Assembly: GCA_038496445.1 (NCBI GenBank)
Contig: JALMLS010000577.1
Coordinates: 248,001-312,000 of the forward strand
DNA from: Trichosphaerium sp. ATCC 40318
Lineage: Eukaryota; Protista; Tubulinea
Reading direction: 5' to 3'
DNA: 64,000 nt
Of this stretch, positions 16,955 to 26,400 are shown in pieces (the first letter of the stretch is position 1; each line of letters begins with the position of its first letter). Made by a program: the position numbers and the translations under genes. The notes under the pieces were generated by a model. That model ran no database searches and had not been told where the DNA came from. It saw nothing but the letters and a program-made list of their open reading frames with translations.

Positions 16955-17782
16955 ATGTCTTCTTATTCTAGGATCGCCTCATTTGTTAGGAGCATAACTA
17001 CATCCGCAACAGCGCACTCAAGTGCATCAAAAAAAAGCAAAATTGTTGTTTGCTCAAGGTCATTGTTTTGGTTGTTTCCATGTGCTTACTGTTATAGGAA
17101 CGATGAAGGCTCAGCAAACGCGGCTGTAATGGTAAACCAGGCAAGCTTCCCTCGGAAGGAATTACCAGCCTCCCAGAGAGTACCGCTACGCGACAAAACA
17201 ATGAAGCAAAAAGTTGAGCCGTTAAATATGACATCTACTCGCTAATAGTAATACAAGGTTCCTGAAGCTAAGATTCTACCTCCCTGTGCAAGACAGCATT
17301 TTCTATCACCTACGAAAGTTGCACCAAGTTTATCTTTAGCAGATTGTATCATATTCTTAAAAGCATGCACTACAAATAGCCTGCAACATCGGCCTTTCGA
17401 AGACTTGGTTGAAATTGTTTTCTGCGCTTTGGACACCCTTCGGGATTTGCACGCTAGAAACATCACTCATGGAGCAGTTAGAACTAGCAGCATCTTATAT
17501 TTACCGGCTGGCGAGATTAAACTATCGAATTGCGATAACTCACTCCAGCATGCGACACCGAGAACTAAAACAACATTGAAAAAACGCAAGTATGCTGACA
17601 TTGTCTCCTTGGCTGAGATGGTTGTCGAACTTGCTCTGAGCAGTGACGTACTGTCTCCAAACGAAATTAATCTTCTTCTTACGTTTTCAATGGAGTGCTA
17701 CGACAAAAAGAGAACACTGAAAATTTTATGTGATTACTTGAGTATTATACGAAATCTTGGACAATCAGACTTTAGAATTTAG
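16955..17782 (+). CDS. Degenerate kinase-like (pseudokinase) protein
   Basis: LDTLRDLHARNITHGAVRTSSILY...GEIKLSNCD...ADIVSLAEMVVEL matches kinase subdomains VIa-IX, but with no HRD, DFG or visible Gly-loop/VAIK. Confidence 0.5.
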
Positions 17783-18131
17783 AACCTAGAATCAGGTTTA
17801 CCTGCCTCTCATGTTCAATGAATCAACACTCTATAAATTGTTAAAGGATATATTTACCAGACATAGAGCTATGTGCACTAGCTTGGTATACATTTCTTGC
17901 TACAACTTGTTTGTAAATAAACTTTTCCATGTTGCTACGAATAGTACTGTCTTGCATGAAACGTGAACACAAGGTAGTGGTTAGTTAAACACTCGTTGTA
18001 GTATACAACAGCCATACCGCTTACTTTTTATTTTGCAGTGAGGGGATATTAGCCAAGGCTGTATTTATTTACAATCATTAGATATTTTTTTATTTTACAA
18101 TTATTTAACGTCAATTGGCTTTGTTTGTCTT

Positions 18132-21100
18132 TTAACTATACCCCAGTCTTAGCAAATTCTTTCTTCTATAAAAAAGGGTTAGTGACTCCATACAGTGTTG
18201 GATGAAAAATAAGAAACGCACATTTTTGACTTTTTTGACTTTCTGGCTCTCTTCAACTTTGTTGGCGAAACCTCCTCACTAGTATCCTCATCAAGTTCAC
18301 CCTGCATCGTCATAGCACCTTGACCAGCTCTTGGTGTATTTTCCCTAAATTTACCATTAATACATATTCCAGTAGCTTTAATCTCCAACCTGCTGCTTGC
18401 AGGTGATAGGCTTCCCATGCTTCGTGATCGATGAAGGCGAGCTCGTGCACTCAATAATCCGCCTTCTTTTGACATTTGTATTGTTTGTCTATTACCTCTA
18501 TTACCTCGAACCCTCCTAATCCAATATAATGAGACTCTGCTAACGCATTGAAATAAAGCTAACGAGGTACCTTGGCGAGTGATCACTTTTGCTCAAAGCT
18601 GTCTTCTGTTGGCTGAAAATGCGAATATTATCACCTTTCTGTTTCCTTGGTGAACCAGGTTCCCATATAGGCACAGTCGCACTTTCAAGTGGTGGTAAAG
18701 AAGGCATAACGGTTGGTATTTCTCTGCTGTACCGTAGATCAGCGTAAGATGTCGATGGCGCTAGGAACCAAATTTATCAGTACTAATGACAACTTTGTGA
18801 GTTTGTCTATCTTTCGTACTAGATAGTATTGATCCAGAAGCTTCACTTGCATCATAAATGGTGGATGGTGTTGAGCCTACCTAAAAAAATACAAGATTAG
18901 AAGATATACAGTCAGTTAATCTTGCGTGTACAGTATTAGCACGTTCAAAGAAACCTCCAACTTGAGAGCCTTTTCCACTTCGAAGATGTTCTTTTAATTT
19001 TGCAATTTCTTGATCAAGTTGCCTTTGTTCTAGTATTTGTTCATCCTCATCCTTTTCGAATTTTAGCCACATGTGCATATTCTCAAAAACCCCTGTAGCA
19101 CGTGATAAGAAAAACTAGTGACTGCATAATAATCACATATAAAGAACGTACAAGCATGAAAAGATACAGGTTTGCGACCAACTACAGCTTCAAAATCATT
19201 GCTCACTTTCAAACTACTTGATTGTATGTAAAACTGTACAAGAGACCTAACAGATACAGTATTAACAAAACTCAATCATGTGATTACAGCGTACGTGCTG
19301 GGAGCCGAAACTCGTTTTTTAAGGAACGCTATTGCCTCTTTTTTTGTAACCGGTTTATGCGTGAGCTCTCGCAATCCTTGTCAAAAGAGTTAGCACTTAC
19401 GAGAAAAACAGTTCTAATTATATTTCTTTTTTACCTCCATTGATGAGTACTTTGACTATGCTTTCTATTCTTTCACCATAGGATGTACTACTAATGGTAT
19501 ATGTCTTTTCATCATGCTGTGATCCCTTGTGTGTTGCAATTTTTACCAGAAATTCAGCGCAATCCTTACCGTTAATGAGGTGCTACAGCAAAACATTGTT
19601 AGTATCTCAAAAAAAAGAAAAGTATTTACCCAAGCCCAGTGAGTCATAGCAACAAGGTGGTTCTTTTCCTTGACTTCTTCGCCGAAAATGGCGTTAAAAT
19701 CATCATATGTAGAACCTGCTCTTACAATTGTGTAGTGTGTAACAATACGTTTTACCTAGGCTTGTTATCACCACAGAATCATAAATTTGATAAAAAGTAG
19801 TCATCGTACTGATTGCTCTATTTCATGTGCCCATTTACTCAATTTATTGGTGAACCTACCGCAACCTGGTACACATTAAGTACACGTGTACAATTAAGTA
19901 ATTTAAAAAAAAAAGATTGATGAGTTGTTAAGACTAACCTATGCTGCATGGTGTGAACCTAATAGCACGTTGTACACCCACTTTGTTATTTGCTTTTCCA
20001 TATATTTTTAAAAACTCTCTGAACCTGAAATACTCTTGTTGATCGTTATCTGTAAAGAGTAACAAGCAAGTGACATCTTGAGTTAAAAAAAAGGTCAACA
20101 AAAAAAATTAAACTCTAAAAAGCAGTTGTACTTTGGAATAGGTTAGACCACGTTGCAGGATTTTGTTCTATCAAAAAATCGTTAACACCATTGTAATGTA
20201 TTAGACTACATACCTGAATAGCGAATAACAGTAATGTCAAATGGTATGGCATCCTCTATTTTAGCCTTTTCTGGCATAGCTAATTTAACATTGTATCGCT
20301 GCAAAACAAACACATTAAGCGAATAAATCTACGCATGTTTTTACGCTTACTTTAGCAACCAACATCTGTGCTACTACACGGGCAACCTTACTTGTCCCAC
20401 TGTACACCAAATACTACAGCAATGAGACAAAGAAAACACTTGCTCAACGTACAGTATCTTTGGTTATCAAATCCATTTCTTTGCAAAAGTCTGCTGACTT
20501 GGTTAACTTACTGCCTACAGGTACAAATTAGACCACTTGCGCACATGATTGTTACACATACCTTTATTCCTTGATTTCTTGTCACGAATGCTATCCATCC
20601 ACGCCTTCCACTGACCGTCCCGTATTTTTATTGCCTTGGAATCCAAAAAAACAGCTCTTTAAACAAGTATGAGTCATTTGTTAATATTAAAATATTAACG
20701 TACTTCCCACCAGATACACCAATAGCACGTGATCCACCAAGAGATATAACCTCAATCTCTGGCTTCTCTGGCCTTTTGTATACATATTTTGGCTTTTTAC
20801 TTTTAATCACCAGCCGAAGGTTTTTAATTACAGTCTCAGCTTGGGCGATACACCGCTCTGGATAGGATTCTTTGAAGGAGTTAACAGCACCAGCAACAAA
20901 TATATGAGGCCAATCAGGAAGTTGAAGGTATTCATTGACCTGAAAAATTAACTGTAAGTAATACTGTTCAGCTCTGTTCTCACGTTTTCGTACTTTAATA
21001 TACGAATCAGTTGTGAGACAGTCATGGAATGTTGACTTCATAAATTCTGACGATGGCTGTGGATCACAGAAAAAAACCTAAGAAAAATATAAGCCTTTCC

Positions 21101-23170
21101 ATTAGGTTATTATAACCTAACCTTCTTAGCGTTGAGGCGGTAATTTCCGCCTGGCATAAAAGAAAACCCATTATCATCATTTTTTTGTACAAACTCCCAG
21201 TCAACACTTCTTAGCACTTTGACACCTTTTTTAATCAATGCATCAAATACCAAACTCGCACACTAGAACATTAGTGATAATCTGTAAACGAAAATTAATG
21301 TACACGTACTTCCTTATTAACATTATCTACAAGATAGTAATCCTTAGCCACCAAGGTTACTGTATGCTTAGTCTTAGAGCGCCTACAACTTGTCACAAAT
21401 ACTTAGGAATTAGCAACTACGCACTTGTGCACCTCGGCCAACTCCCCTGCAATAGATACGCCCATAGCACCGCATCCAACTACAAGAACATCCTACAAAG
21501 AAAATAAGAGTAAAAAAAAATGTAAAGAAGCATACAGTGGATGTTTTCAACGCCTTCATATGTGTTCGTAGTTCAGCCATGCTATAATTCATTACGTAGC
21601 AAGGATCTGGATGCTTTACTTTCGCTAAAATGAATATTTAGCACGTATAGAAGAAAGATCGCATGCGTGTACCTATATAAGACATGCCAGTACATACAAC
21701 TAGATAGTCATATGAAATTGTTTGCGTTTCCAATATAACCTTATCTAGGCCAACTCTCTTGACTTCGCCTATAACAACACGTGTCCTTTTTAGATATGAG
21801 TCATGTAAACATGTGATATTCCTTTCTGCCTTTGCTTTCGCTTTTTCTTTCATTGTTGAATGAAAGAATCCAATTAAAGCAGGGCTGATGTCAAACGATT
21901 CCTATAAGTAATTAGTAAATCAAAGTTAACCTTCAGGATACGCGTATTGCCTCATACCTTCATGTCAATCAATACAACCTCAATACCTTCATCTTTTTCC
22001 ATTCTTTTGGCAATAAGAGATCCAGCAAAGCCACCACCGATAATAACTAATCGCGATTTGGATATTTCTGTGAGATCGGCTTTTAAATCCAAGAATTCTG
22101 GGAGGTAAGTGATAATCAAATAAATAGCCAGCTCTTTTATTGCATCATCGAATATAGAGTGCTTGCGTATGCCAGATTGTGACATCTCAGAACACAAGTT
22201 TTCAATTGTTTTTGGTGCTAATTTAAGCTTGCACGTGGTACCAAAATATCTCCTGCTGATATGCTTTAAAAGGTCTTTTAACTCAAACAGATCAGCCTAA
22301 AACCATTCTTATAAGCAAAAAGTCTCACTCAACACAAAAACAAAAAAAAAATAGTTGTCACATGACGTATGACAATCAAGAGTTCGAATGGAACGAATTA
22401 AATTAAAAAAAACTCCTTACACAATTTGTTGGATAGTGTTGGAAGTTTTTTATTTGATTTGTAGTTTTTATTGTTTCAGGAGAAAATCTGCAAAATATAG
22501 GGTACGTACTTGGCGAAATTTTATTACATCTGCCCAAAAATCTACATTGATATGTTCTTTTCCATGTGCCTGGACAAAATACCGAAATTGATCCTGGCGG
22601 ATCTTGTCGTTCATAATCGCTTCAATCTGTTCCATACGCTTATCCAACACCTCCAGAAAGAATTGATCGCGTTTAAATCGCGGAAAACTGTCAGCTGACA
22701 ATGTAGTATGGACGGAACTTAAAGCGTCTTCGAATACACTCTGAAAATCGGCCAGGGGTGTAGAAGAGCGCTAGTTACATTATAAGGCTCGTTTTGTTAT
22801 TAAATAAAAAACAATTTTATACTCAGTTTGCGTCTTACCTTGCGAAATACCTCTACAATACGCTCTTGGATATTGCCTGGAATGTTAACTTCGTACTGAG
22901 AGTTTTTGTTGAAGTATTTATTGTACACCATGACTGATGCAATTGCTGGATCATCAGCCCTTCTGACATTGCGTACATCTAGGTAAAACTCTAGATTCTA
23001 AATATGGTAGTTAGACGCGCTGTTTGCAGTAACAAAAGGTGCTCGTAAGCGTGTTGTACCTCTTGAGCGTATTCTTTCGTTAGGAATTTTTTAAACGCCG
23101 TGACGAAGTCAGCATCATCTAGAACAGTGTCTAGAGTGAATTGACTAGCCAGCGCATGAGACAGAGCCAT
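18132..23170 (-). CDS. RGS-RGS-FSP1/AIFM2-like FAD oxidoreductase-NmrA-like fusion protein
   Basis: RGS1: LDTVLDD...AFKKFLTKEYAQENLEFYLDV. RGS2: IMNDK...FRYFVQAHGKEHINVDFWADVIKF. Oxidoreductase: LVIIGGGFAG, YDYLVVCTG, VLVVGCGAMGVSIAGEL. NmrA-like: YLVYSGTSKVARVVAQML, TIVRAG, INGKDCAEF, FEAVVGRKPVSFHAWVFEN. S/R-rich tail. Confidence 0.75.
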
Positions 23171-23402
23171 TTAAAATAGCGCTCTATTTCCTCACAAATA
23201 ATGTACCGTTACATTCGATAGAACAGGAAATCGGTAACGTTTGCAGTAAATAACGCCAACCATTTAAAAAACTGAAAACTGTGAAGTGATGGTTCGGCTT
23301 AAGCCAGGCAGGAACTGAAATAACACGAAAAGGATCTAAACAACACCACGCAATAGGTGGAGTGTAGCAGTGATCAGTTGAGGCTTGTTTGTGTCACATC
23401 CT

Positions 23403-26400
23403 ATGGAAAAGAGTGTACAATTAAACACTGATGACGGTACCAGCGTATTTCATAACGGCAATTTGCTAAATTACATACTTAGCCCTGGAGCCTGAAACTG
23501 ATATCAATTCACAGCTCAGCGAACAGCTTAGCCGCATTATATCATTAAAAGAAACAATAATAGACTTTTACGAAGATGACGAATTTCAAGTGCGTTTAAT
23601 GGCACGGACGCCACCCTTATTCGCGCGTAGGCAGTATTAGACTTGTTTTCGAACATGAAGGAAGTGCGTGTCGTTACCAAAAATCTGTTTTCTGGGACAT
23701 CCCCTTTTGCCACTGTCCGCACAATGTCTCAGGAGCACTTGAGCAGAGTAAGTTAGATTGGTTGGTACAAAAGCTAACCAAAAACAGCTTGAAAGTGATG
23801 TTGTTACTGTGGCACTCTACGGCCGCACGAAGGCAGGAAAAAGTTCCCTCGGAAACGTCATTCTAGGAGAAGATGTACTACCAACAGCAGAAACACCGTG
23901 CACATCCTGTGCCTGCATCATAAATTCAGGAAAGCTGGATAAAGACAGGTACTAAAATATGCAGCTACTCGCATCTAAATGGACAATATAGGGCAGCTAT
24001 GGTAGTTTTAGAGCCCGATGCTAATATAGATGCAACGTGGAATCGCCCTGACGTACAAGACGAGCATCTGGAACTTAAAGCTTCATTGCAAACTCTCGTA
24101 AAAAACCCAGTAATTTCAAATGACAACCTCGGTTAGTTATCATTTTTCATTACGTAACTGAGCTAACAATGACAAGATAAAATACTTCCCCTAGTAATAG
24201 ACATGCCCGCAGTACTACGCGACTGCCCTCTTGTCAAGGAAGTCCAATTACAACGGTAACCGGAAACAAATATATTCCAAATCTTTCTTTGACACCTGTC
24301 ACATTTATAGCCCAATTTTTGGTATTGATAAACCTGGTATACGTGTCATCGATACTCCCGGAGAAAAAGAAAATTACCTCTTAAATTTAAGAGCCAAACA
24401 CAGTGCGCAATCAGCATCGCTGATAATCCACGTTTTTCGGTGTCAGGACGCTATGGTATGGACATGTAAAGATAACAATTTACTTACCTATTAAAAGAGA
24501 GACGAGCTAAAATTTATCGAACGCCAGCACGCCATTGGCGGGGATATTGTATTTGTTCTCAATATTTACAGCACTGACACAGAAGAAGCGATATTGAAGG
24601 CAGAGAAGAGGTTACGCCAACAGTTAGCACAGTTAAAGGATCCTAAAATCTTTAAAGTACGTGCAATGTAATTTCGAGTTTGAAGGTTAACTTTTACACC
24701 TAGTTCAATGTAAAGCAGTGTAATTATGGTGATTATAGCCCAGATTTCGTTGCCTTCAAGTTGGCACTTTGTGAATGTTTACAAATACGGTCTAAAGCCA
24801 TGGTATCAGCTTTGTTGAGCAATATGTATCAATTGATCCGGTACGTAGCTGCAACCAAATACGTGCTTATCTTCTGTAGTGTGCAACATTTGTTTGTGTC
24901 CAAGATTATAGCATCCCATGTTAGGACGTCAGTTAAGAGACCAGACAATGAACTATCTAGGATTGATTACAATGTGATTAAGCAAAAAGCAAAAGAAATA
25001 CAACTAGAAATACTAGCATTCGAAAAAGAAGCAAGACAAAAAGTAAAACAAATGCAAGTGAAGTTTAAGGCGCATTACTTGAAAGTAGTGGAAAAATTTA
25101 GAAACAAAGTACTCGGTAACGGCATACTAGATGTACGCGCATCTATTTCGTATAGTTCATCAACACGCTCTTTACGAAGAGCTTTGTTATTAATGTACTT
25201 CGGTATTTAGGATATGGAACCTAGTGTTCCCTTTGAAGTACAAGAGACTACATTCTGGAAAAGATTCGAAGAGAATTTCAAAGGGAAACGTTTCACTGAC
25301 TATGACTCTGAGTTATTTGAGCAATTGAAGATAAATTTTGAAAGAGAATCACGCAGCTCTTTGATTACCTTCGTCCGTACAGAGCGAACAAAACTGGATA
25401 CGTAAGTGCTGAGTATATTATTGATAAGAAACATTTAATTTGATGCAAAAAAGGTGGATAGAAAGTGAAGTAGAACGCTTGCAAGCAGTCACAGAAGAAG
25501 TCTTTGCCAATATTGGTAGTTCAATTTGGTATGTTTGAACGAAAGTATTTTTTTGTTTATTGTAACATGGTTAACATGGCTACAGGTCATCTCAAACACG
25601 CGAATTGTTTGTTAGAGTTGAAGGACAACTCTCCAAATTCACTCAGGTAACGTTAATTTATTTTTGTGGGTTTCTTTCTAACAGTTGGTAGTGGAATGCT
25701 CAACGATTGGGTATGCTAAATTTGTAGTTTAGTTGGTTTCTCTTATTATTTTTCTAGTACCTCCTGCTGCAGGTTTTGGTGTCGCTTCAGTTGGTATTGC
25801 CAGTACCGGCGTAGCGTTATTTGGTACAATAATATGACCCACTATTTATTAACCCCTTATAGCTGCTGGCACGTTGTCTGCAACAGCTACAGTAGTAACT
25901 GGCGGAGTAGCTCTGCTAGTCACAACCGCAGTAGCTGCAGCAGTTACCCTTGCAAATGTGAACTGGAAATCGACGATGTCGTATTCGCCTGGAAAAGACG
26001 AACAAGGCACGTGATTTATTTTAGCGTGCTTTTCTTAACAGCAATGTAGAAACCAAAGAAAGAATATTTGACCTGCTAATAAAGACATTAAATGAGCTCA
26101 CAAAGAAACCAGAGTTCGGAGATTTGGCAGCTGGTGCTCTTGGCAACCTTGATGGGAAAATTGATTACATCAGTAATTGCCTCAACGTCTGTCTATTAGA
26201 GATTGAAAGTATTGTAGAGGTAAGATTGGCAGTTTATTTTTTTGTTAGTCTAACAAGTATGGAAGGCTCAACAACTCTCTTTGGACTTAGATTATAATAA
26301 ACTCTGCGAATACTTATGGATGAGAGACTTCTTGACAGAGTACACAGTAAAACTTATGGAAGAATGCGCTAGATTCGATTTTAAAACTACAGAAATTCTG

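Follow-up and report, generated by a model that had tools for sequence, protein, structure and literature searches.

On the minus strand of a 64,000-nucleotide stretch of the Trichosphaerium sp. ATCC 40318 genome (assembly GCA_038496445.1, contig JALMLS010000577.1, positions 248,001 to 312,000; the window, to which all coordinates below refer) lies a gene that combines parts not usually found together. Two RGS domains are followed by a domain of the FSP1/AIFM2 type, which belongs to the NDH-2 superfamily of two-Rossmann flavoproteins, then by an NmrA-like domain and finally by a serine-rich tail. Signalling through heterotrimeric G proteins is restrained chiefly by RGS proteins. The analysis reported here suggests that this protein is one of them, and that its two enzyme-like domains probably no longer work as redox enzymes. 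The gene is arranged divergently from a plus-strand gene for a dynamin-VPS9 protein. The coordinates of all these features are collected in Table 1.

The gene is scattered over many short pieces in the list of open reading frames (ORFs) of the window, and its exons were assembled with a dynamic programme that combined splice-site matrices, built from 12 confirmed introns, with codon log-odds taken from the long ORFs of the window, the RNA-covered stretches serving as constraints. For the latter, contigs of three public runs were placed on positions 17700-23650; the runs are presumed to be RNA, as the contigs omit short GT-AG introns in the way that transcripts would, and their identity to the window is at least 95% and mostly at least 99%. 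Within the RGS gene the contigs show eleven CT..AC joints (GT..AG on the minus strand) of 45-68 nt, and one further GT..AG joint belongs to the plus-strand neighbour. A twelfth intron of the RGS gene was deduced from a contig whose loose end continues into the following exon, starting ESFD. The other 14 of the 26 introns are ab initio predictions only, and one exon of 63 nt (20351-20413, YLVYSGTSKVARVVAQMLVAK), bordered by introns of 39 and 52 nt, was inserted by hand, in phase. Two preceding ab initio models were dropped, one for false introns within RNA-covered exons and the other for merged, over-long introns. The coding start is placed at the ATG at 23170 because a stop codon lies immediately upstream and because contig X2 continues unspliced from exon 1 to 23224. 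This is also where the sequence-only reading of the locus had begun the gene, but the other end of its span, 18132, has to be replaced by a stop codon at 18179-18181.

Intron length is uniform, at 39-73 nt for 25 of the introns, with a single outlier of 213 nt (22297-22509). Splicing of the latter connects ...FWADVIKFRQ to ADLFELKD... and restores a spacing like that of the first RGS domain. The outlier also has a second donor, GTAAGG, and a GT..AG stretch of 22 nt, which may allow for an alternative micro-exon. Neither a tRNA nor an Rfam match was obtained for the gene, this intron included. Two other introns, 20940-20993 (54 nt) and 18345-18389 (45 nt), keep the reading frame and contain no stop codon, such that their retention would add only 18 or 15 residues; the 45-nt intron is seen spliced out in contig X1.

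The RGS gene is expressed, with contigs that show GT-AG joints and lie on four transcript islands (exons 1-3, exon 4, exons 11-12 and exons 19-27). That a single gene and a single transcript extend across the whole of the model is a product of the modelling, and one in which considerable confidence can be placed. The alignments of the FSP1-like and NmrA-like parts described below leave no large gaps, and each modelled exon supplies an expected element of the fold.

Two exon pieces exceed the Pfam gathering score of the RGS family (PF00615), 23.9 bits. One of them, 22803-22997, reaches 24.1 bits over profile positions 27-87, and the other, 22471-22770, reaches 37.9 bits, divided between two stretches that correspond to the end of one RGS domain and the start of the next. 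For the first RGS domain the Pfam E-values of its exon pieces are 4.9e-5 and 2.7e-9, and contig X2 confirms the two introns within it. Exon 3 is likewise matched in two stretches by the PDB structures of RGS8, RGS1, RGS5, RGS7, RGS4 and RGS2, the RGS8 match having an E-value of 6.1e-5 and pairing its DSYPRF with the DSFPRF of the first domain. A PDB search with exon 2 gave no RGS match, although the Pfam profile recognises this exon. The C-terminal half of the second domain, in exon 4, gives a weak but collinear Pfam RGS match (E 0.11, profile positions 46-110), and when the two domains of the protein are aligned with each other the score has a z of 5.8, with none of 500 shuffles as good.

The difference between the two RGS domains lies in the residues that would face a Galpha subunit. 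In the complex of RGS4 with Galpha-i1 the contacts are made by E87/N88, N128 and D163/S164/R167. The first domain keeps AQEN, EVNI and DSFPRF, whose positions we take to be those that touch the Galpha switch regions in that complex, and in the internal alignment these motifs are replaced in the second domain by HIN, LKL-AP and ITYLPEF. Thus, the first domain is probably competent as a GTPase-activating protein (GAP) for a Galpha subunit, since the motifs at the contact positions are kept, and the second is probably a diverged RGS-homology domain, since they are not.

The second RGS domain leads directly into the flavoprotein fold. Its end, a linker of about 12 residues and the sequence SRLVIIGGGFAG...VVLIDMK all lie inside exon 4, and a single ORF, 21952-22197, contains both the end of the RGS domain and LVIIGGGFAG. 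The junction is transcribed, as record 3 of contig X2 covers 21957-22181. The best meaningful PDB matches to the first Rossmann motif and the DMK are to FSP1/AIFM2 (E 0.0022 and 0.033). In Pfam two exons match Pyr_redox_2 (PF07992) collinearly, with profile positions 2-30 on exon 4 and 63-110 on exon 5, and with scores for the exon pieces of 17.3 and 11.9 bits that do not reach the gathering score of 26.1. The remaining FSP1-like exons, searched singly against Pfam and PDB, gave weak or sub-threshold matches and the C-terminal one none, these exons being too short for such searches.

In the spliced product, residues 256-622 align with Escherichia coli Ndh, verified as a member of PF07992, with a Smith-Waterman score of 126.5 against 49±8 for shuffled sequences (z 9.5, 0 of 300 as good), and the same region compared with QorB as a control gives a z of 0.2. 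The Ndh alignment runs from end to end, pairing GGGFAG with GGGAGG, YDYLVVCTG with YDTLVMALG, GCGAMGVS with GGGATGVE, FFCDP with VWAAG and IFVAGA with IYAIGD. Both GxGxxG loops are therefore present within a full-length alignment, as is to be found in a fold with two dinucleotide-binding domains. The likeness to FSP1/AIFM2, an NDH-2-type NAD(P)H:quinone oxidoreductase, extends to a fold of about 360 amino acids, to GGGFxG followed by (V/I)DMK(D/E)SF, to a second GxGxxG at the expected spacing and to collinearity as far as the C-terminus. However, in FSP1 the N-terminus carries a myristoylation signal where the amoeba domain instead sits behind two RGS domains, and the cofactor motifs themselves have diverged. 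Of the four cofactor motifs of NDH-2/FSP1, the amoeba protein has lost three: Ser takes the place of the Glu in GxGxxGxE, Pro that of the WxxG Gly and Ala that of the GD Asp. According to Nakamura et al., GxGxxGxE and WxxG serve NADH binding and GD serves FAD binding, and in FSP1 the E156A mutant is impaired, G244D is inactive and D285N is both inactive and without FAD (PMC10643123). With changes at these same positions the FSP1-like domain is probably not a flavoenzyme.

Downstream of a short linker exon, a further domain resembles the atypical short-chain dehydrogenases/reductases (SDRs) of the NmrA, HSCARG (NMRAL1) and QorB group. Searched singly in Pfam (E up to 10) and PDB its exons gave no match, being too short for such searches, and a homologue search with E. 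coli QorB returned only near-identical E. coli sequences that were of no use for a family profile. Comparators were instead obtained by tblastn of E. coli QorB against plasmids, which produced four plasmid genes of the NmrA family, verified as PF05368. The spliced residues 622-925 align with the four encoded proteins with Smith-Waterman z values of 9.4, 5.5, 4.4 and 4.1, and the pairwise comparison with QorB is not significant (z 1.0 to 1.4). A five-sequence PF05368 profile aligns over positions 9-282 of its 287 to residues 648-924, with a score of 20.3 bits against 7.9 for the best of 2,000 shuffles and -2.7 for the FSP1-like part, which also contains Rossmann folds; without the hand-added exon the score is still 19.0 bits. 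The amoeba domain thus shares with the NmrA/HSCARG/QorB proteins a collinear match along the full profile, including the C-terminal subdomain. It differs from them in that it has no match to Pfam at the level of single exons, in being fused within an amoeba protein rather than standing alone, and in its nucleotide loop, where SGTSKVA takes the place of G(A)TGxxG such that all three glycines have become Ser, Ser and Ala (the comparators have GATGNVG, GATGRVG and GATGQLG). Known NmrA/HSCARG sensors require this loop for the binding of NAD(P)(H).

Beyond the NmrA-like domain the protein ends in a tail with no Pfam match, of which a 226-residue part is Ser-rich (15% Ser) and ends in a basic cluster, KLKRARKSKKSK, plus a few more residues.

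The architecture is that proposed from the letters alone by the sequence-only reading. Its two RGS domains are borne out by the gathering scores on two exon pieces and by the RGS structures that match exon 3, and its direct joining of the second of them to a FAD Rossmann fold holds within an ORF and a transcript-covered exon. The order that it gave, FSP1/AIFM2-like and then NmrA-like, is upheld by alignments of both parts, end to end and far above shuffles, with verified family members. The degenerate motifs to which it drew attention are likewise present, GVSIAGE in ORF 21406-21492, FVAGA in 20631-21077 and YSGTSKVA in 20318-20413, and the erosion goes further than it described, comprising GxGxxGxE to GCGAMGVS, WxxG to FCDP, GD to GA and GxxGxxG to SGTSKVA.

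Table 1 Features of the RGS gene and its upstream flank in the window (aa, amino acids).
Feature	Position	Strand	Basis and remarks
Whole coding region	18179..23170	-	27 exons, 26 GT-AG introns, ~1,151 aa (1,151 codons)
RGS domain 1	22666..23146	-	~aa 9-125, exons 1-3; AQEN, EVNI and DSFPRF kept; Pfam and PDB RGS8
RGS domain 2	22087..22638	-	~aa 135-247, exons 3-4, interrupted by the 213-nt intron 22297-22509; divergent
FSP1/AIFM2-like (NDH-2 superfamily) two-Rossmann flavoprotein domain	20563..22056	-	~aa 258-620, exons 4-12
GGGFAG, first GxGxxG (FAD ADP-binding loop), intact	22021..22038	-	same exon as the end of RGS domain 2
GCGAMGVS, second GxGxxG intact, Glu of GxGxxGxE (FSP1 E156) replaced by Ser	21454..21477	-	aligned to Ndh GGGATGVE
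FFCDP in place of the WxxG NADH motif (Ndh WAAG, FSP1 G244)	21060..21074	-	Ndh alignment
FVAGA in place of the AIGD 'GD' FAD motif (FSP1 D285)	20886..20900	-	Ndh alignment, IFVAGA against IYAIGD
Linker exon 13 between FSP1-like and NmrA-like domains	20453..20514	-	ab initio; internal ATG (MDLITKDT)
NmrA-like atypical-SDR domain	19070..20413	-	~aa 642-925, exons 14-23
YSGTSKVA, eroded nucleotide loop	20381..20404	-	in the hand-added exon 20351-20413
Tail	18182..19069	-	coiled-coil-like stretch, then Ser-rich region with Pro and Arg; introns all confirmed by contig X1
Transcript-supported introns (12 of 26), first six	22998-23059, 22771-22838, 21902-21957 (loose end), 20657-20703, 19583-19629, 19377-19434	-	contigs
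Transcript-supported introns (12 of 26), last six	19247-19294, 19093-19151, 18881-18931, 18761-18819, 18516-18570, 18345-18389	-	contigs
Divergent intergenic region common to the RGS gene and the dynamin-VPS9 gene	23171..23402	.	contigs

What, then, might two folds of quinone-reductase type be doing behind a pair of RGS domains? The interpretation favoured here, and held with moderate confidence, is that one gene gives rise to a cytosolic multidomain RGS protein in which a GAP domain, a binding module and a pseudoenzyme platform are brought together. The first RGS domain would most likely act as the GAP for one of the Galpha subunits of the organism, and the second, as a diverged duplicate, would probably serve for binding or as a scaffold. 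The FSP1-like and NmrA-like domains appear to descend from enzymes of the NAD(P)H:quinone-reductase type that have lost the residues by which FAD and NAD(P)H are held. Together they most likely form a platform, structural or protein-binding, by which the RGS pair is positioned or regulated, and the basic, Ser-rich tail could provide for localisation or phosphoregulation. Weighing against this interpretation are the transcripts, no contig from the three public runs spanning 20884-21878 or 19889-20485 (exons 5-10 and 13-18), the contact residues of the first RGS domain, which were assessed by motif and by an RGS8 alignment of the C-terminal part only, and the intact glycines of both GxGxxG loops in the FSP1-like domain, with which some nucleotide binding would be possible.

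The last of these points leads to a rather different view of the protein, as a redox- or dinucleotide-gated RGS in which NAD(P)(H) or a quinone would still occupy the remaining Rossmann loops and thereby alter GAP activity. The intact GGGFAG and GCGAMG loops would suit such a role, as would short linkers between the domains, about 12 residues separating the second RGS domain from the Rossmann motif, and the NmrA/HSCARG family is reported to include non-catalytic NAD(P)H sensors (PMC3602244, PMC4690889). The losses in three of the four cofactor motifs, however, fall on sites at which one substitution is enough to weaken or abolish FSP1 activity or to remove the FAD, and this correspondence speaks for a pseudoenzyme scaffold rather than a dinucleotide sensor. 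In addition, the NmrA-like loop retains none of the three glycines in a segment that the known sensors use, and the second RGS domain is without the Galpha-contact residues that the first one keeps. A gated RGS is accordingly regarded as unlikely. A broader version of the idea is more doubtful still, namely that the eroded pair is a cassette for sensing NAD(P)H, quinone or a related metabolite that has been wired more than once into amoeba G-protein signalling, whereby the metabolic or redox state of the cell would directly set the lifetime of Galpha-GTP. Active catalysis, with a quinone reductase tethered to G-protein signalling in which either domain turns over NAD(P)H and quinones by means of non-canonical residues, is very improbable. 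Both parent families do include NAD(P)H:quinone oxidoreductases (FSP1, and QorB by annotation), and the FSP1-like domain still has its two glycine loops. Yet other residues stand in the positions of the GD Asp and the WxxG Gly, whose FSP1 equivalents are essential for activity (PMC10643123), the Glu of GxGxxGxE is lost and the NmrA-like loop is eroded. The FSP1-like and NmrA-like domains are thus probably neither a working redox enzyme nor a working sensor.

The second of the transcript gaps bears on whether there is one gene here or two. If the intron 20515-20561 were left unspliced, an RGS-RGS-FSP1-like protein would end at a stop codon at 20516-20518, and an NmrA-like protein with the tail could start at the ATG of MDLITKDT near 20476. 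The boundary between the domains would then coincide with an in-frame stop and with a downstream ATG that lies eight residues before the Rossmann beta-strand, and contig X1, which carries the C-terminal half of the NmrA-like domain, begins only at 19719, beyond the uncovered stretch 19889-20485. Against such a division, the gap from stop to ATG is only about 39 nt, too small for a 3' untranslated region and a promoter, and the 47-nt stretch 20515-20561 has a GTATGT donor, a TGTAG acceptor and the same length as two confirmed introns. The reading phases also agree through exons 12, 13 and 14, and each modelled exon corresponds to an element expected of the fold. Rather little credence can be given to two adjacent genes, and the single-gene model is retained.

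Within the RGS family an unusual combination of this kind is not out of place. De Mendoza et al. describe independent radiations of RGS proteins in several lineages, amoebozoans included, with most species having RGS architectures that are unseen elsewhere and with GAP activity lost in some RGS domains (PMC3971589). As lineage-specific architectures are so common, an RGS protein with a new partner domain fits the family. The amoeba protein resembles multi-RGS and RGS-fusion proteins such as RGS22, D-AKAP2/AKAP10, the GRKs, SNX13/14/25 and the Dictyostelium RGS-kinases in that RGS domains are joined to a lineage-specific partner. It also resembles the multi-RGS proteins in having a tandem pair with one canonical and one diverged copy. 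RGS22 aligns over the RGS-RGS junction with an E-value of 0.22, which is not significant. The FSP1-like and NmrA-like partners found here are, however, absent from the RGS fusions listed in the survey (PMC3971589), and a full-text literature search found no paper that mentions both an RGS domain and a pyridine nucleotide-disulphide oxidoreductase. The junction exon was searched against 1.84 billion representative proteins, with two spurious matches only (one a repeat artefact, the other a generic Rossmann duplicate), and against JGI metagenome contigs, with no relative, the reach of such a search toward distant relatives being limited by a query of 113 amino acids with a diverged RGS half. No close relatives of the junction exon are thus found in the searched protein and metagenome sets.

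The surroundings of the gene can be described briefly. The RGS-gene contig extends to 23224 and the contig of the dynamin-VPS9 gene begins by 23350, leaving an untranscribed gap of at most about 125 bp between the divergent transcripts, which suggests that the two genes share a bidirectional promoter. The intergenic region of 232 bp reported by the sequence-only reading stands, being bounded by the ATG at 23170 and the reported start of the dynamin-VPS9 gene at 23403. Near its 5' end the dynamin-VPS9 gene has a 46-nt GT-AG intron, 23436-23481. On the other side, a 125-aa ORF on the plus strand (17405-17782) converges on the 3' end of the RGS gene about 400 bp from its stop codon, and Pfam gives nothing significant for this ORF (PAD_M, with E 0.006, falls short of the cut-off).

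The gene is likely to represent a lineage-specific RGS architecture, unusual in the combination of its domains and ordinary in its likely function. It would provide a natural case of FSP1-type and NmrA-type folds reused as pseudoenzymes in a signalling protein. Protists have evolved many lineage-specific RGS proteins, and in this one a former quinone-reductase pair would have become a non-catalytic appendage. Finally, were it true that this part of the protein still binds a metabolite, it would form a direct link from metabolism to G-protein signalling.

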